Assembly (NCBI GenBank): GCA_009859145.1
Contig: VRVR01000033.1
Location: forward strand, 186,001 to 250,000
Length of the DNA stretch: 64,000 nucleotides
Reading direction: 5' to 3'
From: Andalucia godoyi And28
Taxonomy: Eukaryota; Protista; Jakobida
Both the position numbers and the translations under genes were made by a program. Positions 2-56,380 of this stretch are shown piece by piece. The notes under the pieces were generated by a model, which did not search any database, was not told where the DNA came from, and saw only the letters and a list, made by a program, of their open reading frames with translations. How positions within the stretch are numbered: the first letter of the stretch is position 1; each line of letters begins with the position of its first letter.

Positions 2-1222
2 GTCGTGACTGGAGCAATTGCGAACGGCGCCGTGACGTCGGAAAAACTGCGCATCTCAACAACGGTCATCAGCTCAAGCACACAACTTGCAACAAACACA
101 GCAGGGGCAGTTTTCGTTTCAGGAAACACAACCGTGGCATTGCCGAATCCTGCAGCAACAGTAGGGACGCAAATCACGTTTAAAAAGACGGATGCCGGCA
201 CGAAGAGCACTATTGCGGGCACAATAGACCAGTACACGACCGTCGTGCTGTCTTCTCAAAACGCAGTGTTGAGCGTGATGAGCGACGGTACCAAGTGGTC
301 CATACTGTTTGCGATTCCAGATTCGATGACTCCACGCCCCGGTCAAGGTGGACTTATTACTCTTGCGGATCGCAGCTCCACGAGAGCTGAAATCAAGTTC
401 TTTTGGGCCACGGACGACGACGACGATGTTGGTTCTCTGCAATACCGCATGTACTACTCGTCCTCGAGTGCAGACATGATGACTGTGCAAGGGATCGAAG
501 CAACCGGTATCCCCATTGGGATAACTTCTTGGAGTACAATGGCCCAGCTGACCGCAAGTGAAGAACAGTCCGATAAGAACTACGCCTACATTTCGGCCAG
601 TCTTCCTAGTGTTGGTGCGTATTTTCTGAACGTGCTTGTTCGAGATCCGCACAACAACACTGCTGCATACTCGTATCTTCAGGTCACCCCTGCGTCTCTC
701 ATTGCTGTCTGGGCGTACGAAACCCTTCTTGACGGCAACATTGGCGGTCGAACCGGTGCGAATGCAAAATGTGCTTCTTCCTCGTTTCGTCCGCTTGGAT
801 TCAACGGATATGGCGCTCTGATCTCTGTCGGAGGAAATGACCGCTGGAAGACGGGCAATGTTCCATGGAAAGACTGGAACGACGGAGTTCCTTATTTCTA
901 CACGATTACCGGGCAGTATTTAGCAGCGCAGATGGTGAACACATGGACGACCAACGGATTCTCCTTGAGTTCTGCGCTGAATTCCTCCAGCCAGATTGCA
1001 CAGTACACGGCATCTTCCAATGCCAAATACTGGACCGGTACATTTGCGAATGGAACTGCAACTCCCGACACATGCAATGGATGGACATCGAACTCTGCCC
1101 TGCTCTCGGGGACCCTTGGAGACGGGTCAAGCAAAACCCCCCTGTGGATAAACAACGGCACTTCTTCTTGCAACCAAATGCTCCCAATGCTGTGCATCGC
1201 CTACTGGAAGAGTTTTGCTTAA
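2..1222 (+). CDS. 5'-truncated mosaic protein: phage tail-fibre-like segment + FN3-like domain + C-terminal DUF1554 (Leptospira endostatin-like) domain
   Basis: The frame is open from the window edge. Motifs: GAIANGAVTSEKL; VALP..TFKKTD..TIDQ..LSSQ..SDGTKW; W-ATDD..LQYRMYYS..YFLNVLVRDPHNN (FN3-like); GNIGGRTGANAKC..YWTG..TCNGWTS..SCNQMLPMLCI (DUF1554-like). Confidence 0.6.
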   Translation, partial: VVTGAIANGAVTSEKLRISTTVISSSTQLATNTAGAVFVSGNTTVALPNPAATVGTQITFKKTDAGTKSTIAGTIDQYTTVVLSSQNAVLSVMSDGTKWSILFAIPDSMTPRPGQGGLITLADRSSTRAEIKFFWATDDDDDVGSLQYRMYYSSSSADMMTVQGIEATGIPIGITSWSTMAQLTASEEQSDKNYAYISASLPSVGAYFLNVLVRDPHNNTAAYSYLQVTPASLIAVWAYETLLDGNIGGRTGANAKCASSSFRPLGFNGYGALISVGGNDRWKTGNVPWKDWNDGVPYFYTITGQYLAAQMVNTWTTNGFSLSSALNSSSQIAQYTASSNAKYWTGTFANGTATPDTCNGWTSNSALLSGTLGDGSSKTPLWINNGTSSCNQMLPMLCIAYWKSFA

Positions 1223-1698: not shown

Positions 1699-4600
1699 AT
1701 GTTGCGTCGAGTGATTTCTGGATCTGTTCGTCCGGCAATCCAGAGCCGCGCGTCTCTCGTTCTTCTTGGTTCCCGCTCCTATGCATCCTCCACTGTCGTC
1801 GTCGCCGCTGCCTCGACTTCTCCGTTTGCACCTCTTGATTCGTTTACGCGGCGCCACATTGGATCCTCCGACAAGGATCTTGGAGAAATGCTCAACACGG
1901 TCGGAGCAACCTCGCTTGACGGACTCGTCTCTGCAACTGTGCCGCCTGCTATCTACCGTTCCTCGTTGCTCAACCTTGGACCGGAGAAGGCAGAGTCGAC
2001 CTCCCTTTCTGAGCTCAAGGCAATTGCCTCGCAGAACAAGGTCCTGAAGTCGTTTATTGGCCAGGGATTCTACGGAACTATCACACCGCCCGTGGTTCTT
2101 CGCAACGTCATCGAAAACCCGGCGTGGTACACCTCATATACACCTTACCAGGCCGAGATTGCTCAGGGAAGACTTGAATCGCTGCTTAACTTCCAGCAGA
2201 TGGTTCAGGATCTTACCGGATTTGACTGCGCAAACGCATCCCTGCTAGACGAAGCCACTGCATGTGCAGAGGCTCTCTCGTTCACGCACCGTGTTGTCGC
2301 TGCGAATATCTTCTCTGGAGAGGCAGATGCAGCCGAGGTGAACGCAGGAAAGAACACGTTTATTGTGTCGGCAGATTGCCATCCGCAGGACATCGCTGTT
2401 GTCAAGACCCGTGCATATCCGCTCGGAATTACAGTGAAGGTTGTGCAGACCGTCGAGGAAATTGCAGTGTTGTTGAACGGAAAGGACGCTCTCAAGTCTG
2501 TTTTTGGTGTCATGTTGCAGTATCCGACAACGGACGGACGTGTGTTGTCTGTTGAGAAGCTTCAGAATGTGGCAGCAGCAGCAAAGAAGGCGGGCGCCAT
2601 GACGGTTGCCGTTACGGATTTGCTTGCCCTCACCATGGTGCGCCCGCCAGCGGAGTGGGGCGCCGATGTCGCAATCGGTTCTTCGCAACGTTTTGGTGTT
2701 CCCATGAACTACGGTGGCCCCCTTGCGGCGTTCTTCGCGACCTCCGAGAAGTTCAAGCGGCAAGCTCCCGGAAGAATTATTGGTGTTTCTAAGGACTCCC
2801 GTGGTCGCCCGGCCCTTCGTATGGCACTTCAGACTCGCGAGCAGCACATTCGCCGTGAAAAGGCGACCTCGAACATTTGCACTGCACAGGCTCTTCTTGC
2901 CAATGTGGCCGCGATGTACGCAGTTTATCATGGTGCTGAAGGGCTTACGGCAATTGCGAACCGAGCGCATGGAATGGCAGAGACGCTCCGCCAAGGTCTC
3001 GTTGATCTGGGTCTGTTGAATGGCGCACAACTCCAAGAAGTCTTTGACACCTTCGTTGTTGCAAATCTGACTTCTGCAGAAGCGGCTGCCGTTCACTCGC
3101 GCTCTGTATCCCTTGGTTTCAATCTTCGAAATGTGAATGCAACCTCGATTGGTGTTTCTGTTGACGAAACCACAACTCGTGAAGATCTTGTCAAGGTTCT
3201 TGCTGCGTTTGTTGGGGATTTGCCGTCGTGGAAGACAAGCACCGTCGAAAAGGTTCCCGCAGCCCAGTGGGAAAAGGAATTGGCGGCTCGCTTGAAGGCC
3301 CCGAAGGCAGAGAGTGTCCTTGAGCATCTTTACGAGCGTGCACAAAGTGCCGGGCGGTTGAGCTTCTCAAAGGATACGAAGAGAACGTCTGCTTTCCTGA
3401 CTCACCCGGTTTTCCAGTCATACCACACCGAGCATGAGATGTTGCGTTACCTCCATCGTCTGCAGGCTCGCGATATCTCGCTTGCCAATTCCATGATTGC
3501 TCTTGGATCATGCACAATGAAGCTGAATGCGACCGTTGAACTCATTCCCGTTACTTGGCCTGAGTTTGCAAACATGCATCCGTATGCTCCTGTTGACCAG
3601 GCTGCCGGATATGAGCGCTTGTTCGCCGACCTACGCACGTGGCTGTCCGAAATCACTGGATTTCCCGGCCTGTCTTTGCAACCGATCTCGGGATCTTCTG
3701 GAGAATATGCAGGTCTCATGGTGATCCGCAAGTATCTTGAAGCAAAGGGCGAAATTCCCAAGCGTAACATTTGTCTGATCCCTGTTTCAGCGCACGGTAC
3801 CAATCCCGCTTCTGCAGTTCTCGTCGGTTTCGATGTCATGACTGTTGCCTGCGACAAGGACGGAAACGTCGATCTGGCGGATCTTGAAGCCAAGTTGGCT
3901 CAACATGGAGAGAACGTCGCATGCGTCATGGTGACGTATCCGTCGACGCATGGAATTTACGAAGAGGGCATCCGACAGATCACTGCAGCAGTTCACAAGG
4001 TTGGCGCTCAGGTTTACATGGATGGAGCCAACATGAACGCACAGGTTGGTCTGACCCGTCCGGCGGACATCGGTGCGGATGTTTGCCACCTGAACTTGCA
4101 CAAGACGTTTGCGATCCCCCATGGTGGCGGTGGACCTCCTGCCGCTCCGATTGGTGTTGCCGCACATCTGGTGCCGTACATGCCGGGAAACCCTCTCGAC
4201 GTGGAGGCAAACTCTACAAATGTCCTCGGTGCTGTTTCAGGCACTCGTGTTGCAGTTCCCGCAATTCTCCCGATTTCCTGGACGTACATCAATTTGATGG
4301 GCGCGTCTGGTCTTCGCAAAGCGACGTCCGTGGCGATTCTTAATGCAAACTACATGGCCAAGCGGTTGGAAAAGCACTATCCTGTGCTGTATCGCGGAAA
4401 GAACGGATTCGCAGCTCACGAATTCATTCTTGATTTGAGACCCATCAAGGCAGTCACTGGCATTGAAGCTGAGGATATCGCAAAGCGCCTTATGGACTAT
4501 GGTTTCCATGCTCCCACGATGTCTTTCCCTGTTTCCGGTACCTTGATGATTGAACCTACGGAGTCTGAGTCCCGCGCAGAGCTTGATCGATTTTGTGATG

Positions 4601-4887
4601 TTATGATTCAGATCCGTGCCGAAATTGCCGAGATCGAAGCTGGTCGTATGGATCGCAAGAACAATCCTTTGAAGAATGCGCCGCACACTGCTGCTGACCT
4701 GTCGGATTCCAACTGGAATCGCCCGTATTCCCGTGAGACTGCGGCTTTCCCGCTCCCGTACCTCCGTAACTCCAAGTTCTGGCCCTCCGTGAACCGTGTG
4801 GATAACCTCCATGGCGATCGTGCATTTACGTGCTCATGCTGGGGTGTTCCACTGACCGAGTACAACAACCTGAAGAAGGTTGCGTAA
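1699..4887 (+). CDS. GLDC: Glycine dehydrogenase (decarboxylating), glycine cleavage P-protein, mitochondrial precursor
   Basis: WYTSYTPYQAEIAQGRLESLLNFQ, QTREQHIRREKATSNICTAQALLAN, LGSCTMKLN, HGTNPASA and the PLP-lysine motif HLNLHKTF. The first ATG is at 1699 (MLRRVISGSVRPAIQSR, Arg/Ser-rich presequence). 1062 aa, no intron. Confidence 0.97.
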   Translation: MLRRVISGSVRPAIQSRASLVLLGSRSYASSTVVVAAASTSPFAPLDSFTRRHIGSSDKDLGEMLNTVGATSLDGLVSATVPPAIYRSSLLNLGPEKAESTSLSELKAIASQNKVLKSFIGQGFYGTITPPVVLRNVIENPAWYTSYTPYQAEIAQGRLESLLNFQQMVQDLTGFDCANASLLDEATACAEALSFTHRVVAANIFSGEADAAEVNAGKNTFIVSADCHPQDIAVVKTRAYPLGITVKVVQTVEEIAVLLNGKDALKSVFGVMLQYPTTDGRVLSVEKLQNVAAAAKKAGAMTVAVTDLLALTMVRPPAEWGADVAIGSSQRFGVPMNYGGPLAAFFATSEKFKRQAPGRIIGVSKDSRGRPALRMALQTREQHIRREKATSNICTAQALLANVAAMYAVYHGAEGLTAIANRAHGMAETLRQGLVDLGLLNGAQLQEVFDTFVVANLTSAEAAAVHSRSVSLGFNLRNVNATSIGVSVDETTTREDLVKVLAAFVGDLPSWKTSTVEKVPAAQWEKELAARLKAPKAESVLEHLYERAQSAGRLSFSKDTKRTSAFLTHPVFQSYHTEHEMLRYLHRLQARDISLANSMIALGSCTMKLNATVELIPVTWPEFANMHPYAPVDQAAGYERLFADLRTWLSEITGFPGLSLQPISGSSGEYAGLMVIRKYLEAKGEIPKRNICLIPVSAHGTNPASAVLVGFDVMTVACDKDGNVDLADLEAKLAQHGENVACVMVTYPSTHGIYEEGIRQITAAVHKVGAQVYMDGANMNAQVGLTRPADIGADVCHLNLHKTFAIPHGGGGPPAAPIGVAAHLVPYMPGNPLDVEANSTNVLGAVSGTRVAVPAILPISWTYINLMGASGLRKATSVAILNANYMAKRLEKHYPVLYRGKNGFAAHEFILDLRPIKAVTGIEAEDIAKRLMDYGFHAPTMSFPVSGTLMIEPTESESRAELDRFCDVMIQIRAEIAEIEAGRMDRKNNPLKNAPHTAADLSDSNWNRPYSRETAAFPLPYLRNSKFWPSVNRVDNLHGDRAFTCSCWGVPLTEYNNLKKVA

Positions 4888-5135
4888 GCGGTGAAGATAC
4901 GTAGTTTTCAGTACGATTTGTGGTTTTGATGTGGTGTATGCATGTGCATGTGTATGCGCTGTATGTGTTTTTTGCATTGTGTGTTAGTAGCAATATGGTA
5001 TTCTTTGAAGGAATTAGTAATTAAAATTAAATAAAAAAAAAAGAAAACAAAAAACTCTTTGGAGGTTTTCTATATGTATTGCGCCTTGTGTGATCTTCGT
5101 TGCAGGGCAACAAAATCAACTAAATGCATGGGTGC

Positions 5136-7601
5136 TCACCATTGCGAAACTAATGGTCTTCTCGTTTTGGGTTGCAAGTGTCGATCGAAGAAGTCCAGTT
5201 GTTTCCAGTCATACCAAACATTCGATCCAACGCGCCTTAAACCATGCCGTTCGGCCATGAGAACCACCAAATCATGAGGCTTGCCTGCCTCGACAAGAGC
5301 GTCTATCAAGCATTCTGTATGTTTGAACAAGACATTTTCGTCCATGGATCCGTGAACGATCATCAATCGAGGGGGCATGGAGTCGGGAAATGTGTCTGTG
5401 TGTTCCACAACATTACCTGCAATGTACCCTTGTGCATTATCCGACGGCCGCTCCATGTATCGCTCTGTATACCCGGTATCATACAGTCTCCAGTCAACAA
5501 CAGGCGCGCCTGCGCTTGCACAGTTGAAGAAATGCGGGTACTGGCACATGGCCAGTAGAGACATGTACCCGCCATACGAAAAGCCAAAAATGCCAACCCG
5601 CCCCAGATCGATACGCAGTTTAACTTCCTCCTGCAGATATTGCAGTCCGTCGATCTGGTCTTGCAACTGCGAAGCATGGCCTAGACGACGGTAAAGGGTT
5701 GCCTCGAATTCCTGTCCGCGCCGGAACGATCCGGCACCGTCAACCATGACAACCACATAGCCCTGACTAGCGTACATTTGCATTCGACCCCACATTGTGA
5801 GGGAATACGACTCGGACACAAGTTGCACATGCGGACCACCATACACATACACGAGCACAGGAAACCGTGACTGTGATTCAGGCTCGGCGTAGTCTGGTGG
5901 CAAATAATAGCACCCGAACAGGCGTTCCTTATTTCCGGAAGTTCGGCAGAAGGAGAACATTTGAGGAGGGTGCATTTGCGGCCATGCAATTGGGCAGACT
6001 GACGGAGCGGGAACTCCACAATACGGGTGCGAGATCTCAAGTGCATCGTCGGCTCCCAGGACATCTTGCAGAAAGATTCTGTGCGGCTCACTTCGAGACG
6101 ACGTGCAATACACAAGAAGACGCCGCGGACCATTGAACGAGACCGCATCGACCATCCGTTTGGTACTGGTTACTCGGATAACACCATCATGCTGCTGTTG
6201 TTGGCACTCACTGCTAGCAAATGACGCCATATAAACATGCGACTCAACAGCAGAGTCACGGTTCGCCGTGAAAAAGATACGTCTCTGCGATTCGTTGATC
6301 CACGATCGTCCGTCGACCTGCCAGATCTGTGAAAAGTCGTCCATTGGAACCGAAGAATCCAGAATGGGTGAAAGGCGAGTAATGCACCGCGCGACTTCGT
6401 ATCGTGGCACAAGAGTGTCTGCTGAGACAGGGACCGCGTCAGCGCTGCGTCTGGTCAGCAAAAAGAGATTCCGCAGTCCATGAGAACACAGTGTCTCAGA
6501 CCCAATCACGAAATCCCCATTTGCCATCATGAAAGTGTGATTGTCTGTGTTAATCCATGTGGACGATGTCTCGTGGTACGCGAGGACCGGAACGAAGCGA
6601 TCTGCGTGAGAGGAGAAGTCGCATGAGAAGATCCAGCGGTTTCGCTGCAATCGATCCATTAACTCAAACCAGAACTGTGCTCCCGAAGAACTCCAACCCA
6701 TCCGCGTAATATACTCCCATTTTTCATCCATTCTCGAAAGATCTACAGGTGCATAACCAGTTACGGCCATCGGAGCGGAATCATTGCTTCTGCCGAGATA
6801 CGCAACAAACAATGACACCAGCGCATTCGGTGTCCCAGCCAGTGGATAGGCGTACGAGTCGACGCCCGCGGGATCCTTTGGCTTCACGACAAGTACCTGG
6901 CCGACAGGGCTGGAATCAACTCTGCGGAACAGGATGGCCTGGCCAGACGGCTGGAGGCTCGATCCAGAAACAAGATCAAATTCTTCCTGCATGATGAACT
7001 CTGCCATGCCATACGCTACTTTCTCTCCTGTTTCCCCCAGAACAGACTCGGCATTCACGGTAACACAGGACTCTGTGCGAGACACCATATCGAAAACATA
7101 GAGATGTTTTCCGAGAACGTATGTCAAAAACGAGCCGTCGGAGGAGCATTTCAGGTCGAGGAACGCATCACCGTTTGCGCAGCTTGTCAAAAATTGAGGG
7201 ATCAGATCTAAAGACGTTTCGGTTACACACGAGCAGTCCGCATAAAACATGTTATTTCCAGAAGCAAACAAGACATAGTCTTTCGATGGGCAGTACACAA
7301 ACGACGTAATTCCCGTTCCGGTCTGTCGAAGTCGCTCACGCAGCAGCGTTTCTTCAAGAGTGAGCGTCTGTTGATCCACCGGCAACGAGGATACCAGCAC
7401 ATTCGACTTATTCCATTTTGGAAAATACACAAATAGCGCTTGCCTTCCACCACGCGAGCTGTCTGCCGCTAGATAGTACACTTTTTCAGAGTCGCTCGAA
7501 AACGCAAACGCATGCGGAATTCCAGCAAGCCGCGTCCGCAGAAACGTGCATTTTTCCACAAACGAAAGAACGTCGCTCTTATGCCTCATTTCCCTGCCCA
7601 T
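5136..7601 (-). CDS. DPP9: Dipeptidyl peptidase 8/9-like serine peptidase (family S9B)
   Basis: VYVYGGPHVQLV, GFSYGG (Ser), YDTGYTERYM, HGSMDENV (Asp), ERHGLR (His) and the IMQEEF double-Glu motif. No signal peptide. Confidence 0.9.
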   Translation of the reverse strand: MGREMRHKSDVLSFVEKCTFLRTRLAGIPHAFAFSSDSEKVYYLAADSSRGGRQALFVYFPKWNKSNVLVSSLPVDQQTLTLEETLLRERLRQTGTGITSFVYCPSKDYVLFASGNNMFYADCSCVTETSLDLIPQFLTSCANGDAFLDLKCSSDGSFLTYVLGKHLYVFDMVSRTESCVTVNAESVLGETGEKVAYGMAEFIMQEEFDLVSGSSLQPSGQAILFRRVDSSPVGQVLVVKPKDPAGVDSYAYPLAGTPNALVSLFVAYLGRSNDSAPMAVTGYAPVDLSRMDEKWEYITRMGWSSSGAQFWFELMDRLQRNRWIFSCDFSSHADRFVPVLAYHETSSTWINTDNHTFMMANGDFVIGSETLCSHGLRNLFLLTRRSADAVPVSADTLVPRYEVARCITRLSPILDSSVPMDDFSQIWQVDGRSWINESQRRIFFTANRDSAVESHVYMASFASSECQQQQHDGVIRVTSTKRMVDAVSFNGPRRLLVYCTSSRSEPHRIFLQDVLGADDALEISHPYCGVPAPSVCPIAWPQMHPPQMFSFCRTSGNKERLFGCYYLPPDYAEPESQSRFPVLVYVYGGPHVQLVSESYSLTMWGRMQMYASQGYVVVMVDGAGSFRRGQEFEATLYRRLGHASQLQDQIDGLQYLQEEVKLRIDLGRVGIFGFSYGGYMSLLAMCQYPHFFNCASAGAPVVDWRLYDTGYTERYMERPSDNAQGYIAGNVVEHTDTFPDSMPPRLMIVHGSMDENVLFKHTECLIDALVEAGKPHDLVVLMAERHGLRRVGSNVWYDWKQLDFFDRHLQPKTRRPLVSQW

Positions 7602-8083
7602 CCCTCCACCAGAGCTTCAGCGATTCAACAGAAATGAAAACGGAAAGCGGGAAGCAGAAAGCAGAAAGCAGAAAGCAGAAAGCAGAACGGATTTCAGGCA
7701 TTTTTGCGAATCAAACTCGAAATGCAAACTCGAAACTGGGAAGAAAGACCATGTCTTGCGGCCGTTCAATTGTAGTGCGCATGTGTGATGTATGAATTAT
7801 GATACTCCCTGACTCTCGATGGTCGTCGGCTTGCGGCTTAGCGAGTGCTTATGGGCAAGGGGCAAGTGCTCGTGGATGAAGGACTAAGAAGCATAGAAAC
7901 CTGTGAAGGCTCGCGCGTGAGAGTCCTGGCATCCATTGCTGGAAGATGGGACCAACGAGCAAGCCCAGGCACGACTGCGGGGTCGTGCAATACGACGGAA
8001 GACAGTTAAGAAGGACGGAAGAGGAAGGAATAGCTCTGATTTACTTTTGCATTGGAAGGGAGAGAGAGAGAGAGAGAGAAGGC

Positions 8084-8536
8084 CTAGTGTTTCTTGTCCT
8101 CGACGGCCTTTGCATAAGCCTTTGCATCGAGCAAGGACTCGAGTTCCTTTTCGTTATCGAGCTGAATCTGGATGAGCCAGCCCTCGGTCTCTGGGGCAGT
8201 GTCAATGAGGGAATTGTCATCGACTGCCGCCTTGTTGATGGCAACGATCTTTCCCGATGCCGGAGCATACAGCGAAGCAGTCGTCTTGACATTCTCAATG
8301 ACTCCAAACTCCTTACCCTGCGACACCTTGGTTCCAACAGCAGGCAAGTCGACGTTCGCCACTCCATTCAGCGTGTCAGACGCAAACTTTGAGATTCCAA
8401 CCGTTGCAAGCTTCTTGGCTGCATCATCCACACGGATCCACTCATCGGACTTTGTGTAGCGAGACGCAGAAGAGGAAAACAAACGCAGAGTAACTGCAGA
8501 TCGAGGGCACACTACAGTTCGCACAAACGACAGCAT
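8084..8536 (-). CDS. GCSH: Glycine cleavage system H-protein (lipoyl carrier), mitochondrial precursor
   Basis: ATG at 8536 (MLSFVRTVVCPRSAVTLRLFSS presequence), YTKSDEWIRV, TVGIS, GVIENVKTT with the lipoyl Lys codon at 8285-8287, LYAPASGKIVAIN, PETEGWL. 150 aa. Confidence 0.92.
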   Translation of the reverse strand: MLSFVRTVVCPRSAVTLRLFSSSASRYTKSDEWIRVDDAAKKLATVGISKFASDTLNGVANVDLPAVGTKVSQGKEFGVIENVKTTASLYAPASGKIVAINKAAVDDNSLIDTAPETEGWLIQIQLDNEKELESLLDAKAYAKAVEDKKH

Positions 8537-9054
8537 CCTTTCCAATAGACGACGGTAATCCCTTGGAGCCAACAAAAGCCAATAAAAAAATTTAGAAAAA
8601 AAATCAAAAAATTTGAAGAAAAACAGACAAACAACAAGCAATGCTGCTATAATCGCAGCAAACGCAATGGAGCCAGCAGAGAGAAGGGAACCATTGAACA
8701 CGGACGAAAAGTCGCAGAAAAGACAGAGAGAGAGAGAGAGAGAATGGCCAATGACAGGACTGACAGGCGTTCTGATGTTTCCCTCTTGATGCACAGAGAG
8801 TGCCAATGAGTCGACACGCGTAGACATTGATGGAAAACAACAGCCTCTCTCTCTCTCTCTCTCGCGTGCGCGCACACGCACTTGCTGGGCTTTGGATAGG
8901 TTTCTTTTTTTGCTTCGTTGCAGATTTTGTTCCGTGGGTTGGCGAGGGTGTGTCAAGGCAAAATAAGAAGAAAGAAAAAGAAAAAGAAAGACGGAAAGAG
9001 AAGAGAAAGAAAGAAAGAGAAAGGGAGAGAAGAGAGGAAATAGAAAAAGTCAAA
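8537..9054. promoter_or_regulatory. Putative bidirectional promoter shared by GCSH and SHMT
   Basis: 518 nt between divergent ATGs, containing (GA)n, (CT)n and purine-rich tracts. Inferred from gene geometry only. Confidence 0.55.
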
Positions 9055-10452
9055 ATGCTGTCAGTTCGTTCTGTTGCCCGTCGTTTGTTTGGTTCTGGAC
9101 CTGGTTCTGCGCGTAGTCTGCCTACGCACCGGACGCTGGCGGAGCAAGATCCCGAGCTCTCATCGCTTTTGAAACGTGAGATGCAGCGGCAGTTTTCCGG
9201 ATTGGAGCTGATTGCATCCGAGAACTTCACCTCGCGAGCGGTTCTCGAGTGCCTTGGATCGTGCCTTACGAACAAGTATGCGGAGGGTCTTCCGGGTGCC
9301 CGCTACTATGGAGGAAACGAGGTTGTGGATGAGATTGAACGTGTGTGCCAGAAACGATCTCTCGAGGCTTTCTCGCTCAACCCTGATGTATGGGGAATTA
9401 ACGTACAGCCATACTCGGGGTCGCCGGCCAACTTTGCTGCGTATACGGCGCTGCTGAATCCTCATGACCGCATTATGGGTCTTGACTTGCCCTCTGGTGG
9501 CCACTTGACGCACGGTTTCTACACCGCAAAAAAGCGTGTTTCGGCGACCTCAATCTACTTTGAGTCGCTTCCGTATACTGTGGACAGAAACACAGGAATC
9601 ATTGATTACGATGGCCTTGAAAAGATGGCGAACGTGTTTCGTCCGAAGTTGATTATTGCAGGATATTCTGCGTATCCCCGAGACTTGGACTATGCTCGCT
9701 TCAGAGCTATTGCAGACTCTGTTGGAGCACTGCTGATGTGCGACATGGCGCATTTTTCGGGATTGGTGGCTGCAGGTTTGCTGAAATCGCCGTTTGACTA
9801 CTGCGATGTTGTCACCACCACGACGCACAAATCGCTCCGTGGACCAAGAGCAGGTCTGTTCTACTTCAAGAAGGCGATTGGCGAGGAGAAATGCAACAAT
9901 GCAGTGTTTCCTTCTCTGCAAGGAGGGCCACATGTGAATGCGATTGCTGCGGTGGCAGCGCAGATGAAGGAGGTCAATACAGCCGAGTTCAAAGAATACG
10001 CAAAACAGATCATCAAGAATTCGCAGGCCATGGGTAACAAGCTCAAGCAGCTTGGAAACACCCTTGCAACCGGTGGCACCGATAACCACCTGTTATTGTG
10101 GGATGTGCGGCCACTTGGGCTGACGGGATCGAAGCTCGAGAAGCTCTACGACTTCGCGCACATCACCGTGAACAAGAACTCCGTTGCAGGTGATGTGTCA
10201 GCCATGACGCCTGGTGGTGTCCGACTTGGAGCACCGGCTCTTACGTCAAGAGGATTTATTGAAAAGGACTTTGAGCAGGTTGCCGAGCTGTTGAACACCG
10301 GAGCCGAAATCGCAGTTTCCATCCAAGAGAAGAGCGGCAAGGCACTCAAGGACTTCGTTTCATCGTGCGCGACGGATGAGCGTGTGAAGAAGCTCGGAAG
10401 CGATGCAAAGGAATTGGCTACCAAGTTCCCCATTCCAGGATTCACGCCTTAA
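9055..10452 (+). CDS. SHMT: Serine hydroxymethyltransferase with mitochondrial-type presequence
   Basis: [53 protein letters not shown] (PLP Lys), LQGGPH. ATG at 9055 ([14 protein letters not shown]). 465 aa. Confidence 0.98.
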
Positions 10453-10797
10453 TTGTACACTGAGCATCCATAGCCATCGCTGACGATGCATAAATAAATG
10501 TTTGCAAACGGGAACTGTGTTGCAGTTCCGAGAATGGGGATAGACCCCAGCACGCATTTCGGCGTTCTTGAGATACGTGTTACCCGCGCCATTTCAATCA
10601 CCGATTTCTCAATAACTGATCACCCGCTGTACTTACAATTTCTACTTGTCGCCTATTGGCTTCTTTTTTTGCGCCTTGCTTTTTCGTTTCGTCTTTTCTC
10701 TTCTCTTTGTTTTTTCATGTCATACTTGAAATAGACACTTACGCTTGTATCTGTGCGGTGCTTGACGGTTTTAAAAAAAAATAATTAGCAAGACACG

Positions 10798-12846
10798 ATG
10801 TGGGGACAAGGTCGCGGTCCGTCACAAGGGTACGTTCCTTCGAATCCACCACTCTCACAACCAACGTTTGCGACGCCAATTTTTTCATCCAATGTTTCTC
10901 CAGCGCAGCAGAGCATCCAGAGTACGCTGAATGCGGCCGCCAGTGCAGCCGGTGCAGCCGGTGTAGCGAATACGGGTCTTAAGACACTTCGAGGTCAAAC
11001 GGCACAAGATTGGATCGAAGGAAGAACACCAGATGGGAAGGCGTACTGGCATAATGTCGTCACGAAGGTCTCGGTTTGGGATATGCCAAATGAAGTTCGA
11101 GCTTTTCGAGAGGCATCATGGACTCAGCATTCGGCCCCGGACGGAAAACCATACTATTACAATGCAGTCACGCAGGAGACAACTTGGGACAAACCACAGT
11201 TCTTCACGCCTCCGCAAGCGACTGCCACGAGCAACGTCGGCAGTGTCCGTGTATGCACCAACACCACCACGTCCTTCTTCCCGACCACCGCCACGACCAC
11301 CGCTACCACATCCTCCAGCGGCAGCTCTCTTAGTGATGTCGTGAGTAAGAATCGAGCTTCAAGCCCAACGCATTCGGTGGATGGGTCGATTTCTTCTTCT
11401 GTTGTTTCCGAAAAAGAAAAGGACAGCGGGAAAAAGAAGTCACTGGATCGGCGAAAAGAGGAAGTACTGGAACCATCGGAAGACATGATGCCCATTCTTG
11501 AAAATTTGAAAAGAGAATTTCCAACGCCGTTGGAGAAAAGGCAGAGCTTCCGAAGCATGCTTTATGATCTGGACATCACGGTTGATGCAGTTTGGGAGCG
11601 TATTCAGCGGGTCCTTGCTCGGGATGCAAGGTACTTCCTTATCAAGTCGGCTGGTGAGCGCAAGCAGATATTCATCGAGTACGTCGCACAAAGAAAGAAG
11701 GAACAGCGGGAGCAGCGTGCGTTGGAGAAGAAACGGCAGCGAGAGGATTTTGTCAGTATGCTGCAGGAGTGCAAGGATCTGAACTCAGGAATGTCGTTTT
11801 CCCGTGCTTCAGTGTTCTTGAAGCTCGATCCACGGTTTTGTGCGTTGCAGGACGAAAGGGAGCAACGGGATTTGTACGAGGACTACATGATTGATTTAGA
11901 GAAGAAGGAGCGCGAGCAGGAGTCTCTTCTGAAAAAGAAGCTGGAAGATGACTTCATTGCTCTGTTGGAAGAGAATCGTGGAATAATGGATGGCTCCAAG
12001 ACGCAATGGACAAGAATCGCTCCCTTTTTGCAAGCAGATTTGCGGTACAAAGCCGTGACTTCTGATTCGCAAAGGACGGACCTGTTCATGCATTTCATGA
12101 AGAAGCTTCGAACAGAGGAGGACGAACGGTTCGTTCGTGAGCGGGCAGAGCGCAAGCAAAAGGAACAGTCTCTCCGCGAACAGTTCAAAGATTTCGTGAA
12201 GAGCCAGGCTTTGGAGGGCAATGTTCATTTGCGAATGTCTTGGGGTGAGTTCGAAAAGTCTCATATCAATAGCGGTGAGAAAGTGTTTGTCACAGTGTGG
12301 GATCAGCCGGTCCATCCCCGCGAACTGTTTGAAGATGTCATTGACTGGTGCGAAAAACACTACGCGGACAACAAGCAGGTAGTTCGCAGCTTGTTGGATC
12401 AGTTGAAAGTGAATCTTTCTTCTACGTTGACGTTTGATTCTGTGTGGAACAACCCCAACACTGTAGAAAAATGGAACAGTCTTCCAGAGTCAGCTCGTTC
12501 GGTTCCTTTGTGGATCATTCGCTTGTGCGTGACAGAATTCATTGAAAAAGAAAAGGATGCCGCATCAAAGTGGAAGATGACGCGAGACAAGTGCATCGAA
12601 TTGTTGAAATCGAGCGATGTTCCGGGCGATGCCAGATTCGACGATTGGGATCCCAAACTCAGTCTTCACAACTGCTGGGTGCGAATGCCGTATCTTGACA
12701 GACATGATCTGTTCCAAGAGTTCGTCTCTCACCGTCTGCCGCGTGAAGAAGCCAAGGATGGGGGTTCTGCGTCGCTGAAGCGGGATCACGGACCCAATGA
12801 TGTTGAAGCGGATGACGCTCCCGCAGCAAAGAGACGCCTCTGCTGA
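10798..12846 (+). CDS. PRPF40: Pre-mRNA-processing factor 40 (two WW domains + FF repeats)
   Basis: WIEGRTPDGKAYWHNVVTKVSVWDMP and WTQHSAPDGKPYYYNAVTQETTWDKP, followed by FF repeats (FRSML..W..L..DARY..ERKQIF). Confidence 0.9.
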   Translation: MWGQGRGPSQGYVPSNPPLSQPTFATPIFSSNVSPAQQSIQSTLNAAASAAGAAGVANTGLKTLRGQTAQDWIEGRTPDGKAYWHNVVTKVSVWDMPNEVRAFREASWTQHSAPDGKPYYYNAVTQETTWDKPQFFTPPQATATSNVGSVRVCTNTTTSFFPTTATTTATTSSSGSSLSDVVSKNRASSPTHSVDGSISSSVVSEKEKDSGKKKSLDRRKEEVLEPSEDMMPILENLKREFPTPLEKRQSFRSMLYDLDITVDAVWERIQRVLARDARYFLIKSAGERKQIFIEYVAQRKKEQREQRALEKKRQREDFVSMLQECKDLNSGMSFSRASVFLKLDPRFCALQDEREQRDLYEDYMIDLEKKEREQESLLKKKLEDDFIALLEENRGIMDGSKTQWTRIAPFLQADLRYKAVTSDSQRTDLFMHFMKKLRTEEDERFVRERAERKQKEQSLREQFKDFVKSQALEGNVHLRMSWGEFEKSHINSGEKVFVTVWDQPVHPRELFEDVIDWCEKHYADNKQVVRSLLDQLKVNLSSTLTFDSVWNNPNTVEKWNSLPESARSVPLWIIRLCVTEFIEKEKDAASKWKMTRDKCIELLKSSDVPGDARFDDWDPKLSLHNCWVRMPYLDRHDLFQEFVSHRLPREEAKDGGSASLKRDHGPNDVEADDAPAAKRRLC

Positions 12847-12978
12847 GTTGGCTTCAGACTGCTGTCCACATCATGATGGTTTCCGTTCAGTTCAGTCCAG
12901 ATGCCCGTTTACAAAGGATGAATGTACAGTACATAGATATTGATAGACCCACCCGTGGATTCGCAGCGGGTCACTTCA

Positions 12979-14988
12979 TCAAGAGTCGATGTGTTCGACG
13001 TAAGCTGGATCTTCGCCACCCATTGTCAACGATGGCCACGACTGCGAGCGTTTCAGCGGAACTTCAAATCCAATTTGACGACAGGCTGGAGTTTCATCGG
13101 CAGAGAACGACACGTGTGCGAATGCCACATTCGAGTACAGACGCAACGACCACGTTCGCAACTGAACAATTCCTGTTTGCGAAACTGTTCGGTATCGAAC
13201 GTGGAACGAATTCTGCCGAACGTCCCACACAGGGTTGTCGTCCGGAGGACTTGGAAGTGGATCGCAGATGTGCACAACCAAAACCTTCTTTTTTGAAGAT
13301 CCATCTACAACATCATTGATGCGCCACTTCAGCAAGGCACGCGGCGCATCATCTGGGAAAATGACGGGCTGATGCTCCTGCGCCCACACGGACCGCATCG
13401 CATATGTTTTATCCTCTAGATGGACTTTCAGCGACGTCGCGTCCAAACGATCGAATCCGGACTGGGCGAAGATTTGACGGAACCCCGCAGAGTCCTTGTC
13501 GACATGCAGCAAATGCGAATAGCGAGAGAAATCACCACTTTTCTCATTCTTGCTGTACCTCCACCCAAGATCCGCGCGCTCCAGAAATCGAGATACGCCC
13601 GTCATGGTGGCACTTGTGTCCATATGGACGAACTTCCTCGGAGAAGCATTTTCAAGGCGGTGCAAGGAAACGAGGGCGTGGCCTCCCGGATAGTTCAGTG
13701 CGCTGACGTAAGCAAAACCAAGAGTTGCTCCGGCAGTGAGTATCAGGAAGCAAATGGAAACGTGGGTCAACACATGCCGAGATCTCGTCCACACCTCGGA
13801 GAACCCATGCGCTGCCACAGCTGTGAACAGCGGAATCGCGTAAAAGATAAAACGAAGCTCCTTGTGAGGCAAAAAAGAGTATAAAAAGACGAACAAGAAC
13901 GCCGGGGCAAACACTCGCACACCACGCCGACCGTTGAACAGAAGGCCTAAGGTCATGATGAAGTAAGTACCAGTCATGGCGCGAGGCAGAGCAGACGAAA
14001 AGTACCAGTCGAAGCTCGCGGTTCCCCAATCGGAAGACTTGTTCAGCACGGTGTTGAAGAACAACACTTCGAATTCTGGCCACAGCAGACGTCTCCAAAA
14101 ATACGAGTCAATCAAGACGGACGCCGTTACTGCGATCCCCGACGCGATGAGACCGGCTTTGAAGACCTTTGAGAGCACGACAGACTTGAAGACAAACAGC
14201 TCCAGCAAGATAAACGGCACTGCAAAGATGACCAGTTCTGCACGAAACACTGCTGCAGCAAATGCAAGAACAGCGATAGCTACGTACACCTTGCTTCGCA
14301 GCCACAATCCAAACGCAACGAGTGCGAAGCAGAGTGCGAACGTGTTGGGCAGTGGCCGTGACATGTAGAACGGGATGTGAAACTGACAAAGGGACATCAC
14401 TCCAAACGCCGTTGCAGCAACAGAGCCAAAATGCAAGCGCACGGAAGCTCTAAAGTACGAATACGCTGCAACCAGATACAACCCAAGAACCAGCCGACAC
14501 GCATACAGCGCCGCGAGCTTCGACGAAACAAGCCCGGTTCGCACGAGCAGCTGCACCGGCAGCGAGACCGCCAGCGCGCCAATGAACGTCCGCGGCACAA
14601 CGCCCGGAAACTGCAGGTGATCGTACTCCGCAATGTCCATTCCGTGAAACAGCATGTCGTGCATTGCCTGCACATTGAACGACTCCTCAACTTTTGTGTA
14701 CGGCCCCACGCAGACATACAGTGCCACCACAAAAAACATAACGATGTCCAAGATCCGGAGTCGCAGCCACTTTTTCCACGACACACCCTGCATTGGAGAT
14801 CCCAGAGCCGCCGCCGACGAGGACCCTGCGGCGATCATCATCGACGACTTTACGATTTCGTCGAGCTTCGAAGGATTTTTCAGCAGGTCTTGGTACAGCT
14901 TTTCGTACGCACCAGCATTCAGCCGCGGTGAAGGAAGCGTCTCGCTCATGTTCCCCACCCGCTTTCGAACACTCGAGCCACCACTCAT
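12979..14988 (-). CDS. ALG12: Dol-P-Man alpha-1,6-mannosyltransferase ALG12 (GT22) with a ~135-aa C-terminal p23/CS-like extension
   Basis: PYTKVEESFNVQAMHD, YDHLQFPGVVPRTF, FHIPFYMSRPLPNTFAL, LPHKELRFI, NYPGG and HMDTSATMTGVSRF, with multiple TM helices. Confidence 0.92.
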   Translation of the reverse strand: MSGGSSVRKRVGNMSETLPSPRLNAGAYEKLYQDLLKNPSKLDEIVKSSMMIAAGSSSAAALGSPMQGVSWKKWLRLRILDIVMFFVVALYVCVGPYTKVEESFNVQAMHDMLFHGMDIAEYDHLQFPGVVPRTFIGALAVSLPVQLLVRTGLVSSKLAALYACRLVLGLYLVAAYSYFRASVRLHFGSVAATAFGVMSLCQFHIPFYMSRPLPNTFALCFALVAFGLWLRSKVYVAIAVLAFAAAVFRAELVIFAVPFILLELFVFKSVVLSKVFKAGLIASGIAVTASVLIDSYFWRRLLWPEFEVLFFNTVLNKSSDWGTASFDWYFSSALPRAMTGTYFIMTLGLLFNGRRGVRVFAPAFLFVFLYSFLPHKELRFIFYAIPLFTAVAAHGFSEVWTRSRHVLTHVSICFLILTAGATLGFAYVSALNYPGGHALVSLHRLENASPRKFVHMDTSATMTGVSRFLERADLGWRYSKNEKSGDFSRYSHLLHVDKDSAGFRQIFAQSGFDRLDATSLKVHLEDKTYAMRSVWAQEHQPVIFPDDAPRALLKWRINDVVDGSSKKKVLVVHICDPLPSPPDDNPVWDVRQNSFHVRYRTVSQTGIVQLRTWSLRLYSNVAFAHVSFSADETPACRQIGFEVPLKRSQSWPSLTMGGEDPAYVEHIDS

Positions 14989-15639
14989 TTTTTTAAATTA
15001 AAAAATTAAAAAAATAAAATCCCTTTTAAATTTCGTTCTATCTCCTCTCTCTTTCTCTTCTGATCCTCTCTAGTCTATCGAAGTACCAGGTTACGGGGCT
15101 ACCGGCAGCACCCTCCACACTTACTTCTTTCTCCTTACGCCTGTATCAAGCACCGATGTTCAACGACGTCCGCCCCGCTCTGCAGAAACTCACTGTGTAC
15201 CTCGTGTGCTGTGTGTGTATTCAATCCTTCTCAAGTCCGAGACTCTGCGAATGCAGCAAAGCGTGCGGTCGTCGACCTTGAACTTGCACCTTCAAAGGAA
15301 AATTGAGTCGGTGGGCCTCAACAAACAACAAAAGCCGGGAGAGAAACCTTATCTCCCGAGCTCCGTACGACTGCTTGTGCCTTCTGTGTCGGCGTCATGG
15401 GCCGCTGTGTGCTCCGTCAGCGTCCTCATTGTTCTGCTTTTTGGCGCAGTGTACTCTGTCACTTCTTTCTGTTGCAACGCTCTTCCGGCAACAACGTGCT
15501 ATGATGCACGCGGTCGCAGCGCCACAGCAGGAAAAATGAAAAAAAAGGCAGTAATAAACGGGTTTCAACGCTTGTAAAACTTCTTGTGCAGCCTCAATTG
15601 ATGCTGCCATTGCTCGCTTCACGACAAAATGCAGAAGAG

Positions 15640-15643
<4 letters not shown>

Positions 15644-15673
<30 letters not shown>

Positions 15674-15724
15674 GAACAAACACACACACACACACGAACA
15701 AACAGACGGACACACACGCGCACA
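15644..15724. repeat. Imperfect (CA)n microsatellite upstream of CPSF2
   Basis: Direct inspection. Confidence 0.85.
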
Positions 15725-15791
15725 CATAAACGATAGCAAAAAAAAAGTAAGAAGAAGAAAAAGAAGAGGTGCTGATTCTTACGAGGAGAAA

Positions 15792-18350
15792 ATGTCGCAA
15801 GTCAGTTTTCGTGCTCTTTTTGGCCATCGCAATAATGGGGGACCGGTGAGTCACCTTTTGAAAGTGGAAGGATGCACAATTCTGTTGGACTGCGGCTGGA
15901 ACGAGGACTTCGACCCAACGTTGCTGGAGCCACTCCGAGAAGTGTGCCCGATTGTGAACGTGGTGTTGGTGTCTCACTCGGATGTGTACCACATGGGCGG
16001 TCTTGTGTATGCGTTCAAACATTTTGGACTGAATGCACCTGTTTATGGAACACTGCCCGCGCTTAAGATGGGAGAAATGTTTCTCTTTGATGCGTTTGTC
16101 AACAAGGAAAACCGAACAAACGAATTTTCTACGTTTTCTCTGGAGGATGTGGACAGCGTAGTCGAGAAATTCATTACTGTCAAGTATTCCCAGACAATCC
16201 GGATTGCCCCATTTGACGTTCCCGTTACTCCGTTTTCGGCTGGCCGGTCTCTTGGAGGCGCGGTTTGGCAGATTAACGAGGACATTGTATACGCGGTGAA
16301 CTTCAACCATCGGAGAGAGAGAATGCTGGATGGATCGGCAATCATTCGGCTTGAGAAGCCAGCAGTCCTGATCACGGATGCGCTCTCGGCGTTCCAGGAA
16401 GCCGTCAAGGTCGAGGACCGTGAGAAGAAGCTTGCAGAGTCTGTTGCGTCTGCTTTCGCTGTTGGTGGGAATGTTCTTATTCCGTGCGATGTTGCGGGCC
16501 GATCGTTGGAGTTGTTGCTGTATCTGAATCGCTGGTGGGAGGTGAATAACTTTTCCGGGAGGTACTCGCTCGTGTTTCTTCACTCACATGCTGTTCGAAC
16601 CATTGATCTAGCAAAATCGGAACTAGAATGGATGAGTGCACAAATGGTCGATTTCGATGCGCGCGGCCAAAATCCATTCGATTTGAAGTGTGTGATGTTT
16701 TTCCATTCTCTGGAAGAATTGTTTAGACAGCCGCTGGCACAGCCAATGTGTGTCCTTGCTACCTCCGAGTCGTTGAATGTCGGTCCCGCACTGGATCTGT
16801 TCTTGCTGTGGTGCCAGCATCCGTCCAACTTGATCCTGTTCATGAATGAAGGACCGCCGGATTCAAGAGCTCGAAAGATTCTCCAAGTTAAGAATCTTGT
16901 GCGGAAAGAGAGCGCCAATGCGGATCCGAACTCGCATGCAGATTCGACCCAGTCGACGTCGTCTCAGATGAAGATGGAAGATGAAGACAGCGTCAATGCA
17001 CTTCCGGCAGGATCGGATTCAGGAATTGTTGCCAATCCAGACGATTCATTCGACATTTACATCGATACCATTATCAAAGTCCCATTGGAAGGCGACGACC
17101 TGGTGGCTTGGAGGGAGGAACAGCGAGCCGTACTGGAGGCAGAACGACAGCGAGAGATTGAGGAGCGAGAACGGAAGAAGTTGATCATTTTGCGCGACGT
17201 GGAAGCCCAGCAACAGAAGATGGAGGAAGATCGTCACTATAAGAAGGGAGAAGATGTACATATGAAGAGTGCGACAAAGGGCGGAGTTAAAACGCGTGCT
17301 GCGAAAGACGAAGAAGGGCAGATTGACATGGAGGACGACTTGGATGGAGATGGCGACGGCGACGAAGAAGCCGACGAAGAAGGCGATGGCGACGAAGAAA
17401 CAGAGGATGAACGAGCGAAGCTGGATCGGTACAAGAACAATCCGCGGTTGTTCCTCCCGAGCAATATGCGGTACAACTCGGTCTATCCTATGTTTCCGCA
17501 CATTCCGGAGGATATTTTGTCTGGAAGACGACCAATGCTGCTGCAGACGGCGAATTCCACGATTGTGGATGATCCCGTGTACGGTTCTGTGATAGATTCT
17601 ACGTTTTTCGTCTCGGCTTTGAATGCACAGAACGAAGACCAGCGTTCTGGTGGAGCACGGACGGGCGCCGATGACAAGGCAGAATGGTCGGATGTTGAAA
17701 TAGAAGCAAAGCTAGACAAGCTTCCTGTTCCGAAAAAGGGACATCCTCTCCAGCAGAATCTGCGGGCCGTATGTCGCGTTGACTTTGTTGACTATTCGGC
17801 GAGACCGGATGCATTGTCCGTGAAGCGCATCATCACTCAACGTTTAGCAGCCCGGCGTGTCGTGCTTGTCCACGGCAGCCCTGAGCAGATCAGGTCCATG
17901 GGAGACTCCATTGCGCGCTCTGCCGCAGTGACTGTTCCTGATACGTCCGACTGGATTGATCTGGAGGTCGATTCCACTGTCATTTCCGTACGTCTTCGTG
18001 AAGACCTCTTAGAAAGCATGCGATGGGTGCCGCTGCAGAATGTTGAAGCCGCGTTTCTCGAAGGCAAGCTGCAGCCGCTGCCAGACGGTGCAGGATATGC
18101 AATTGCACCCCAGACCACGGGCCACATGTCCATCTACGTTGGGGATCTCAAGATGGCCGATCTGAAATCCATTCTACAACAGGCAGGCTTCCAGTCCGAC
18201 CTGCGTGCTGGCTCCGGAACTCTCATCTGTGCAGGGGGCCGTGTGCAAATTCGAAAATCATCTGCAACCACCGTCATTGTAGAAAGCTCGCTGTGTCGCG
18301 AGTACTACGGCATTCGAAGTGTCCTCTACTCGCAGTTCGTCACCCTTTAA
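15792..18350 (+). CDS. CPSF2: Cleavage and polyadenylation specificity factor subunit 2 (CPSF100)
   Basis: Inactive metallo-beta-lactamase fold (ILLDCGWNEDF, VSHSDVYHMGGL, SAGRSLGGAVW, YAVNFNHRRERMLDG), beta-CASP region, DYSARPD, VLVHG and a C-terminal CPSF100 domain. Confidence 0.92.
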   Translation: MSQVSFRALFGHRNNGGPVSHLLKVEGCTILLDCGWNEDFDPTLLEPLREVCPIVNVVLVSHSDVYHMGGLVYAFKHFGLNAPVYGTLPALKMGEMFLFDAFVNKENRTNEFSTFSLEDVDSVVEKFITVKYSQTIRIAPFDVPVTPFSAGRSLGGAVWQINEDIVYAVNFNHRRERMLDGSAIIRLEKPAVLITDALSAFQEAVKVEDREKKLAESVASAFAVGGNVLIPCDVAGRSLELLLYLNRWWEVNNFSGRYSLVFLHSHAVRTIDLAKSELEWMSAQMVDFDARGQNPFDLKCVMFFHSLEELFRQPLAQPMCVLATSESLNVGPALDLFLLWCQHPSNLILFMNEGPPDSRARKILQVKNLVRKESANADPNSHADSTQSTSSQMKMEDEDSVNALPAGSDSGIVANPDDSFDIYIDTIIKVPLEGDDLVAWREEQRAVLEAERQREIEERERKKLIILRDVEAQQQKMEEDRHYKKGEDVHMKSATKGGVKTRAAKDEEGQIDMEDDLDGDGDGDEEADEEGDGDEETEDERAKLDRYKNNPRLFLPSNMRYNSVYPMFPHIPEDILSGRRPMLLQTANSTIVDDPVYGSVIDSTFFVSALNAQNEDQRSGGARTGADDKAEWSDVEIEAKLDKLPVPKKGHPLQQNLRAVCRVDFVDYSARPDALSVKRIITQRLAARRVVLVHGSPEQIRSMGDSIARSAAVTVPDTSDWIDLEVDSTVISVRLREDLLESMRWVPLQNVEAAFLEGKLQPLPDGAGYAIAPQTTGHMSIYVGDLKMADLKSILQQAGFQSDLRAGSGTLICAGGRVQIRKSSATTVIVESSLCREYYGIRSVLYSQFVTL

Positions 18351-25921: not shown

Positions 25922-26014
<93 letters not shown>
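25922..26014. repeat. (GA)n microsatellite, about 46 units
   Basis: Perfect dinucleotide run ending 26 nt upstream of the ATG at 26041. Confidence 0.98.
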
Positions 26015-55876: not shown

Positions 55877-56348
55877 TGCGGTGTGCGGTGACTACGTGTG
55901 TGTTCAGGGGAGAGCGCGCACATGGTGTTTACAATGCACACTGTGAAAAAGATCCGGCGACCGACCGACGGTCACCAAGCAAACCGTCGTACGGCACGCA
56001 TACACAACCCCTGGCACGTCTGGATCGAGACTGGAGTAGTGCGCGCGACATCTGCTTTGAAGAACGCTTGGGCGTATTCGAGCCTGCCCCCCATTTCTGT
56101 ATTGAATTCACATCCCCGTTCGAATGCAAGACTGAGTATGGACAGGTCAGCAACGACTCGCCTTTTGCTTCGTGGACAACGTAGACATCTGCTGTAACAT
56201 GAACCTCTCTTGCTTTGTGTTTTGTATTCTGCTGCTCAAAACCCTAACCCTAAGGCAGTCCTTTTTCTGTTTTCCTCAACAGGGAATTCCCGTGTTTCCT
56301 CTCTATTATATATGCAGTTTCCGCATGAGACAGAGAGAGAGAGAGAGA

Positions 56349-56380
<32 letters not shown>

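Follow-up and report, generated by a model that had tools for sequence, protein, structure and literature searches.

A non-random neighborhood of glycine cleavage system and serine hydroxymethyltransferase genes with a divergent gene pair at its core in the jakobid Andalucia godoyi

The glycine cleavage system (GCS) releases, through its H-protein, 5,10-methylene-tetrahydrofolate (5,10-methylene-THF), which serine hydroxymethyltransferase (SHMT) condenses with a second glycine to yield serine. In bacteria, GCS genes occur as gcvT-gcvH-gcvP operons, such as gcvTHP of Escherichia coli, and these sometimes lie near glyA. Gene clusters of primary metabolism are rare in eukaryotes and are known mainly from fungi, plants and algae; known clusters and divergent pairs include yeast GAL1-GAL10(-GAL7), the yeast DAL cluster, the algal and fungal nitrate-assimilation clusters and the divergent histone pairs. 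In this study, a stretch of 64,000 nucleotides from the nuclear genome of the jakobid Andalucia godoyi And28 (GenBank assembly GCA_009859145.1, contig VRVR01000033.1, positions 186,001 to 250,000 of the forward strand), referred to as the window and numbered from its first letter, was analyzed. According to Pfam matches and open reading frame (ORF) coordinates, the genes for the GCS P-protein (P), the GCS H-protein (H) and an SHMT together span 8,754 bp of this window, which corresponds to four consecutive genes. We find that this cluster is genuine and non-random and that at least part of it is ancient; its stable core is the divergent H-SHMT pair.

The P gene occupies positions 1699-4887 on the forward strand (1062 residues; Pfam GDC-P and GcvP2_C, E = 6e-172). 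Its product is of the single-chain alpha2 type, carries a presequence-like N-terminus of about 45 residues, retains an intact pyridoxal phosphate (PLP)-lysine motif NLHKTF and aligns with the human and Synechocystis structures at 1050-1102 bits. Across a convergent (tail-to-tail) spacer of 248 bp from stop to stop (4888-5135, from ORF coordinates) lies a reverse-strand gene for a serine peptidase of the dipeptidyl peptidase (DPP)-IV/8/9 type (family S9B; 5136-7601; 821 residues; Pfam DPPIV_N and Peptidase_S9). The DPP product has no presequence-like N-terminus, and its motifs GFSYGG, DENV and HGL (Ser-Asp-His) are all present. The H gene, in tandem with DPP on the reverse strand and 482 bp away from it, is found at 8084-8536 (150 residues, translation checked; Pfam GCV_H, E = 4e-33); its product has a presequence-like N-terminus of about 25 residues and the lipoyl-lysine motif ENVK at residues 78-81. 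A divergent spacer of 518 bp from start codon to start codon (8537-9054) separates H from the gene for a presequence-bearing SHMT on the forward strand (9055-10452; 465 residues; Pfam SHMT, E = 1e-171), in which the PLP-lysine motif THK is intact. Each of the four genes is one uninterrupted ORF. An initial annotation of the window had placed P, a DPP-like gene, H and SHMT at these positions within 8.8 kb, with which the Pfam assignments agree exactly, and had described the N-termini of the three enzymes as rich in Arg and Ser. Over their first 30 residues, the three proteins indeed each contain five Arg/Lys, at most one Asp/Glu (0-1) and 7-10 Ser/Thr.

The same three proteins were already annotated and predicted to be mitochondrial in the mitochondrial proteome of A. 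godoyi (Gray et al., 2020; PMC7050145). In the tables of that paper, P is the curated model ANDGO_06511 (1062 residues) and H is ANDGO_06476 (150 residues), both with 0 introns and both with a predicted mitochondrial-targeting score of 87, while the glycine hydroxymethyltransferase ANDGO_06395, taken to be the SHMT of the window, has a predicted score of 80. The SHMT and P proteins match VRVR01000033.1 (a scaffold of 299,965 bp) residue for residue. A second A. godoyi SHMT encoded elsewhere in the genome (ANDGO_06720, P0128), 67% identical, has no presequence; for this reason the SHMT of the window is assigned as the mitochondrial isoform, its targeting being predicted. The T- and L-proteins had been stated to be missing from the window, and this holds as well for the DNA to its left over the 8.3 kb checked (window position 1 is position 8303 of locus L088): the T-protein (ANDGO_03077) gave no tblastn match in the window or in these 8.3 kb, and neither GCV_T nor L-type domains occur among the other genes of the window. 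The T-protein has no predicted mitochondrial-targeting score in the published table (PMC7050145), and its sequence begins right in the conserved domain (MALKTALYDLH...), unlike P and H (87) and ANDGO_06395 (80); either an upstream start was missed by the model or the protein is imported without a classical presequence.

The order and strands of the genes are P(+), DPP(-), H(-), SHMT(+) and that of a WW-FF protein(+), with P and DPP converging and H and SHMT diverging. The locus had been called operon-like in the initial annotation. This description fails, as P is on the forward strand, DPP and H on the reverse strand and SHMT again on the forward strand, so that the members are neither co-directional nor contiguous; H and SHMT, being on opposite strands, are unable to share a transcript. 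Their upstream region is common to both genes, and the arrangement is that of a divergent gene pair with a third gene, P, nearby. The distance between the two start codons is below the 1 kb used to define bidirectional pairs. Since the other divergent pairs in the window have similar spacers of about 0.57-0.8 kb, the spacing of H and SHMT is ordinary for this genome; most convergent pairs are about 0.11-0.25 kb apart.

The probability of such a co-location was estimated for the draft nuclear genome (VRVR00000000), which is described as compact, with 20.09 Mb in 66 scaffolds and most genes intronless (PMC7050145). A gene total of about 8,700 was assumed, based on the highest gene number in the tables of that paper. 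The probability that three given genes lie within four consecutive genes is then 2.4e-7; it rises to 2.4e-6 if the three may be any of the pathway's five (P, H, T, L and the mitochondrial SHMT); a base-pair model of the 20.09-Mb genome gives 5.7e-6 for the same three-of-five cluster. Even if 100-1000 gene sets of this kind were considered, 2e-4 to 2e-3 such clusters would be expected. Random gene order is not a plausible source of the co-location, and the initial assertion that the co-location is improbable by chance stands at about 2-6e-6, or no more than about 2e-3 when the look-elsewhere effect is allowed for generously. P, H and SHMT are three non-homologous members of one pathway that lie closer together than chance would place them, as in a eukaryotic functional gene cluster.

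The best full-length match to the SHMT, P0126 (66% identity), is encoded on a 4.5-kb Logan contig, L002 (SRR15116022; 58% GC). On this contig, a GCV_H gene (150 residues, reverse strand) lies head-to-head with the SHMT gene (482 residues, forward strand) across 411 bp, and the products of both have presequence-like N-termini. After SHMT follows a partial, orthologous S9 peptidase gene, the product of which is 38% identical to the DPP of the window (tblastn E of about 1e-65 to 1e-67); the identities between the contig and the window are 66% for SHMT, 37.5% for H and 38% for DPP. The order on the contig is LSm(+), H(-), SHMT(+), DPP(-), where the LSm-domain gene flanking H has no counterpart in the window. 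H, SHMT and DPP keep their orientations, and their order is cyclically permuted, as local transposition, or tandem duplication followed by losses, would yield. Because the orientations were kept while the order was permuted, the H-SHMT pair stayed intact as its surroundings changed. The bidirectional pair is therefore conserved across species in the same orientation with different flanks. The DPP peptidase has no evident role in the glycine/serine pathway and is still linked to H and SHMT on L002.

The relationship between the two organisms was assessed from DPP and SHMT trees. In a search of 1.84 billion representative proteins, the best relatives of the window DPP were 36-39% identical over a long stretch, and by raw score the L002 fragment ranks 35th against it. 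In a neighbor-joining tree (64 sequences, 458 columns), the two DPPs were sisters in 96 of 100 bootstraps; the two SHMTs were sisters in 46 of 60 bootstraps of a distance-based tree, in which the pair adjoins a clade where A. godoyi SHMT2 is found together with SHMTs of the kinetoplastid type, among them that of Herpetomonas. Since distance methods were used for the trees and the two DPPs sit on long branches, which may attract each other, the grouping of A. godoyi with the L002 organism is suggestive rather than secure. The latter is probably a discoban relative of A. godoyi and possibly a jakobid. We conclude that it is a deeply diverged relative and that the shared arrangement was inherited.

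Synteny in relatives, on which the initial annotation had made its proposal depend, was thus found in part: the H-SHMT-DPP linkage is kept on L002, and neither H nor P was found near SHMT in the other eukaryotes sampled. The SHMT locus of Naegleria gruberi has no H or P within 10 kb on either side, and no H or P was present in the available flanks of four environmental eukaryotic SHMT contigs or of three groups of kinetoplastid-like contigs with co-directional genes. Furthermore, gcvH, gcvP and DPP were found in the flanks of none of 80 metagenome SHMT/glyA loci, a sample that says little about eukaryotes, as most are only 43-51% identical to the query (bacterial-like), with some short eukaryote-like contigs. 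Among the environmental contigs, L089-L095 encode a mitochondrial-type SHMT with an MLRR... presequence, and all genes on them point the same way, as in the polycistronic units of kinetoplastids. Downstream of SHMT, L089-L091 and the P0217 contig share a small conserved gene (124-138 residues); it gave no tblastn match to the H-protein on the contigs checked and has no Pfam match on record.

The H-SHMT spacer (8537-9054) is a putative shared, bidirectional promoter region. It contains the tracts (GA)9 (8726-8743) and (CT)9 (8846-8863), 102 nt apart, two copies of GCCAATGA between them (8747 and 8802) and a polypurine tract of about 95 nt (8960-9054) that abuts the SHMT ATG. Searches for conserved promoter elements, in which spacers were aligned, local alignments were compared with shuffled sequences and shared k-mers were examined, gave only low-complexity similarity; the duplicated GCCAATGA has no counterpart in L002. 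A low-complexity, alternating purine-pyrimidine GC/GT run occurs in both spacers (window 8863-8881 and L002:1396-1412), with the 10-mer GCGCGCACAC in common; it comes directly after (CT)9 in the window and about 30 nt after a GA-rich tract in L002. The window has seven (GA)n tracts of at least 12 nt, where 0.06 would be expected; three of these tracts lie around the H gene. A (GA)10 tract (8060-8079) lies directly 3' of the H stop codon; the longest tract is a microsatellite of about 46 copies at 25922-26013, and others are at 32307-32322, 56333-56348 and 56365-56380. In addition, a (CTT)n microsatellite of about 10 copies is located about 90-115 nt upstream of the P ATG (window about 1583-1614, and also 1297-1310). 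The GCV genes of yeast are controlled via a glycine regulatory region with a CTTCTT core. The resemblance of the (CTT)n tract to this core is probably a coincidence, because purine/pyrimidine tracts are common in the spacers of this genome.

On balance, the explanation that we favor, with moderate confidence, is that the locus is a co-regulated, ancient and vertically inherited neighborhood of nuclear genes for mitochondrial glycine/serine one-carbon metabolism. At its core, H and the mitochondrial SHMT would be transcribed apart from the shared spacer of about 0.5 kb, in an arrangement that would be older than the split between A. godoyi and the second, deeply diverged protist represented by L002. 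The P gene, 3.2 kb away beyond the unrelated DPP gene, would belong to the same neighborhood, each gene presumably being monocistronic and each enzyme having its own predicted mitochondrial presequence. Since the genome is compact and divergent spacers are of the order of 0.5 kb, the spacer must hold both promoters, which would overlap or abut. Given such promoters, coordinated transcription is the most economical functional explanation, and it would fit the biochemistry. The most likely benefit would be coordinated transcription of H and SHMT, and possibly of P, through a shared promoter or chromatin domain, such that the supply of the enzyme producing 5,10-methylene-THF would be matched to its serine-forming consumer. 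A bolder proposal is that the H-SHMT pair together with P is a selectively maintained regulatory module, responsive to glycine or one-carbon status via the spacer and conserved across deeply diverged discobans as a eukaryotic functional analogue of the bacterial gcv operon that would consist of eukaryote-type genes; this is tentative, and we hold it to be possible but somewhat doubtful.

Several other origins of the cluster have to be weighed against this. To an assembly artefact or contaminating DNA we attach practically no weight. The assembly is a 454/Illumina draft with scaffolds partly joined by hand (PMC7050145), and beyond this nothing was found in favor of an artefact. The window is free of N and hence contiguous, the cluster is inside a 300-kb scaffold, and its flanks hold typical eukaryotic genes (WW-FF protein, CPSF100, dyskerin and RagA). 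The genome is described as agreeing excellently with the RNA-Seq data, which the curated models also fit (PMC7050145), and the independent assembly of another organism, L002, has the same H-SHMT-DPP linkage. The initial annotation had also suggested transfer as a block. On such a reading, the cluster would be the remnant of a bacterial or mitochondrial-endosymbiont gcv/glyA operon moved to the nucleus in one piece. Bacteria do cluster these genes, for example within about 8 kb on contig L098, and the 119 best listed matches of the P-protein all look bacterial (54-58% identity). However, the human P-protein (GLDC) behaves likewise. In an alignment of 419 C-terminal columns, the identity of A. 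godoyi P is 60% with human GLDC and 64-71% with these bacteria, with which human GLDC in turn shares 62-68%. The bacterial top matches of P were therefore rejected as evidence of transfer; the two eukaryotic P-proteins just sit on longer branches than their slowly evolving bacterial counterparts. The SHMT, compared with known structures, is unambiguously of the eukaryotic type, scoring about 600 bits with the plant enzyme and 546 bits with human SHMT2 but 365-380 bits with bacterial GlyA; its best database matches are all eukaryotic and come from several supergroups, with Stenamoeba, Cyanophora, a diatom, Ectocarpus and Naegleria among them. The H-protein is too short and divergent to place; a word-indexed search gave only three bacterial-like matches of 129 residues and missed the H-protein of L002. 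On the choice between a shared bacterial donor and vertical descent, SHMT argues against the donor and the P and H sequences are uninformative. Genomic context points the same way as SHMT. The nearest bacterial gcvP, from Nitrospira, stands alone, with gcvT 4.7 kb off and no gcvH or glyA beside it; the bacterial relatives of H sit in a gcvH-gcvPA-gcvPB operon with a split P, whereas the P-protein of A. godoyi is fused; the A. godoyi genes are distributed over both strands, and a eukaryotic peptidase gene separates P from H and SHMT; and the linkage is missing both from the flanks of the 80 metagenome loci and from the other eukaryotes sampled. Transfer as a block is consequently not upheld and is highly improbable; more narrowly still, it is very unlikely that the linkage goes back to an endosymbiotic gene transfer en bloc. 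On L098 itself (8001-16390; ENA metagenome contig k141_1147376, bacterial), the operon is gcvH-gcvPA-gcvPB, and about 6.6 kb downstream on the other strand is a gene of 1057 residues matching SHMT and GCV_T, an apparent SHMT-GcvT fusion.

The more serious alternative is a neutral history, in which a chance rearrangement occurred once and was followed by unbroken inherited microsynteny without selective or regulatory meaning. Several observations weigh for such a history or against co-regulation. The unrelated DPP gene was kept in the neighborhood as well, as passive inherited synteny would also produce, and A. godoyi and L002 group in the DPP and SHMT trees, so that shared ancestry explains the arrangement. 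A divergent spacer of 0.5-0.8 kb is the norm in the window, and a shared promoter region follows from adjacency and is nothing special. No shared cis-motif was found between the spacers of the window and L002, which have only low-complexity GA-rich tracts and GC/GT runs in common, and no cis-element beyond low-complexity tracts is common to the P upstream region and the H-SHMT spacer. The T and L genes lie elsewhere in the genome, leaving only three of five pathway genes linked. The linkage is missing from Naegleria, kinetoplastid-like and other eukaryotic contigs, and the conservation on L002, the one related contig found (4.5 kb), covers H-SHMT-DPP only, as the contig ends inside DPP. Against a neutral history stand the improbability of the initial coincidence (2-6e-6, or at most 2e-3 with the look-elsewhere factor) and the persistence of one particular junction: L002 shows three adjacencies, and the one that A. 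godoyi also has is that of the functionally coupled H and SHMT, while the flanks were reshuffled. The divergence is also deep, with H and DPP about 38% identical, and the pair outlived the breakage of neighboring junctions. A purely neutral history is thus regarded as rather unlikely, though far from negligible, and the co-regulated, inherited neighborhood is preferred.

The remaining genes of the window are functionally mixed, as initially described, their Pfam domains representing a diverse set: a WW-FF protein, an ALG9-like mannosyltransferase, CPSF100, a prolyl oligopeptidase, an LRR-SH3 protein, dyskerin, a protein kinase, PDI, a spatacsin-like protein, a ThiF-type E1, RagA, an M16 peptidase and a dual-specificity phosphatase. 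No tRNA genes are present in the window. The prolyl oligopeptidase (27578-29905, forward strand) is a second S9-family peptidase, 20 kb from the DPP gene. The M16 peptidase (58083-59507, reverse strand; Peptidase_M16 and M16_C, 474 residues) is probably a mitochondrial processing peptidase or core-protein subunit, and hence another mitochondrial gene of the window. To the left of the window are genes for a fructosamine kinase, a saposin-repeat protein and a DUF1554 protein. The last of these (525 residues) is directly upstream of P, at window positions 5-1222 on the forward strand, with its full ORF at L088:7947-9524. DUF1554 is mainly bacterial (Leptospira and relatives), and on this domain distribution the gene is a possible candidate for lateral transfer. 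The assembly gene index (L001 and L088) has only P, H and SHMT as called genes over 23 kb and lacks clear ORFs such as those of DPP, the WW-FF protein and the fructosamine kinase; the deposited or indexed annotation seems to be limited to the curated mitochondrial set.

Although the three enzymes were annotated previously, term searches of the text and supplements of PMC7050145 surfaced no mention of the linkage of P, H and SHMT, and close gene packing is noted there in general terms only. The full-text literature searched, the coverage of which is incomplete, yielded neither a GCS/SHMT cluster nor a bidirectional pair of such genes in eukaryotes, so that absence is unproven. For the jakobids, a deep-branching and little-studied lineage, a conserved GCS-H/SHMT pair accompanied by GCS-P would provide an example of such clustering. 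It would also offer a tractable system in which to ask whether protists with compact genomes balance enzymes that exchange methylene-THF by head-to-head pairing. In addition, the locus indicates that microsynteny can outlast divergence to less than 40% identity between orthologs of protists, which helps in interpreting environmental contigs. It has no bearing on mitochondrial origins; a transferred operon is unsupported by anything at the locus.

Compared with known systems, the locus resembles the bacterial gcvT-gcvH-gcvP operons in that enzymes of one coupled pathway lie side by side, and its linkage, as in those operons, would give coordinated dosage. Unlike them, it has no polycistron, uses both strands and lacks T; furthermore, it is interrupted by an unrelated eukaryotic gene, its enzymes carry separate mitochondrial presequences and its SHMT is of the eukaryotic type. 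The polycistronic units of kinetoplastids, which are also Discoba, share with A. godoyi a compact and largely intronless genome. However, the kinetoplastid-like SHMT contigs consist of long co-directional arrays with no H or P near, whereas the A. godoyi genes alternate strands with short spacers. A likeness also exists to the eukaryotic divergent pairs and small clusters (GAL, DAL, nitrate-assimilation and histone genes), where, as here, non-homologous genes of a pathway are adjacent; the A. godoyi locus shares with them a head-to-head pair with a short common intergenic region and, for this pair, conservation between species. Co-regulation has been demonstrated for those examples, whereas here it is putative and only three of five pathway genes are linked. 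The A. godoyi locus is accordingly a new case of a known eukaryotic feature, namely head-to-head pairs of co-functional genes and small clusters of primary metabolism.

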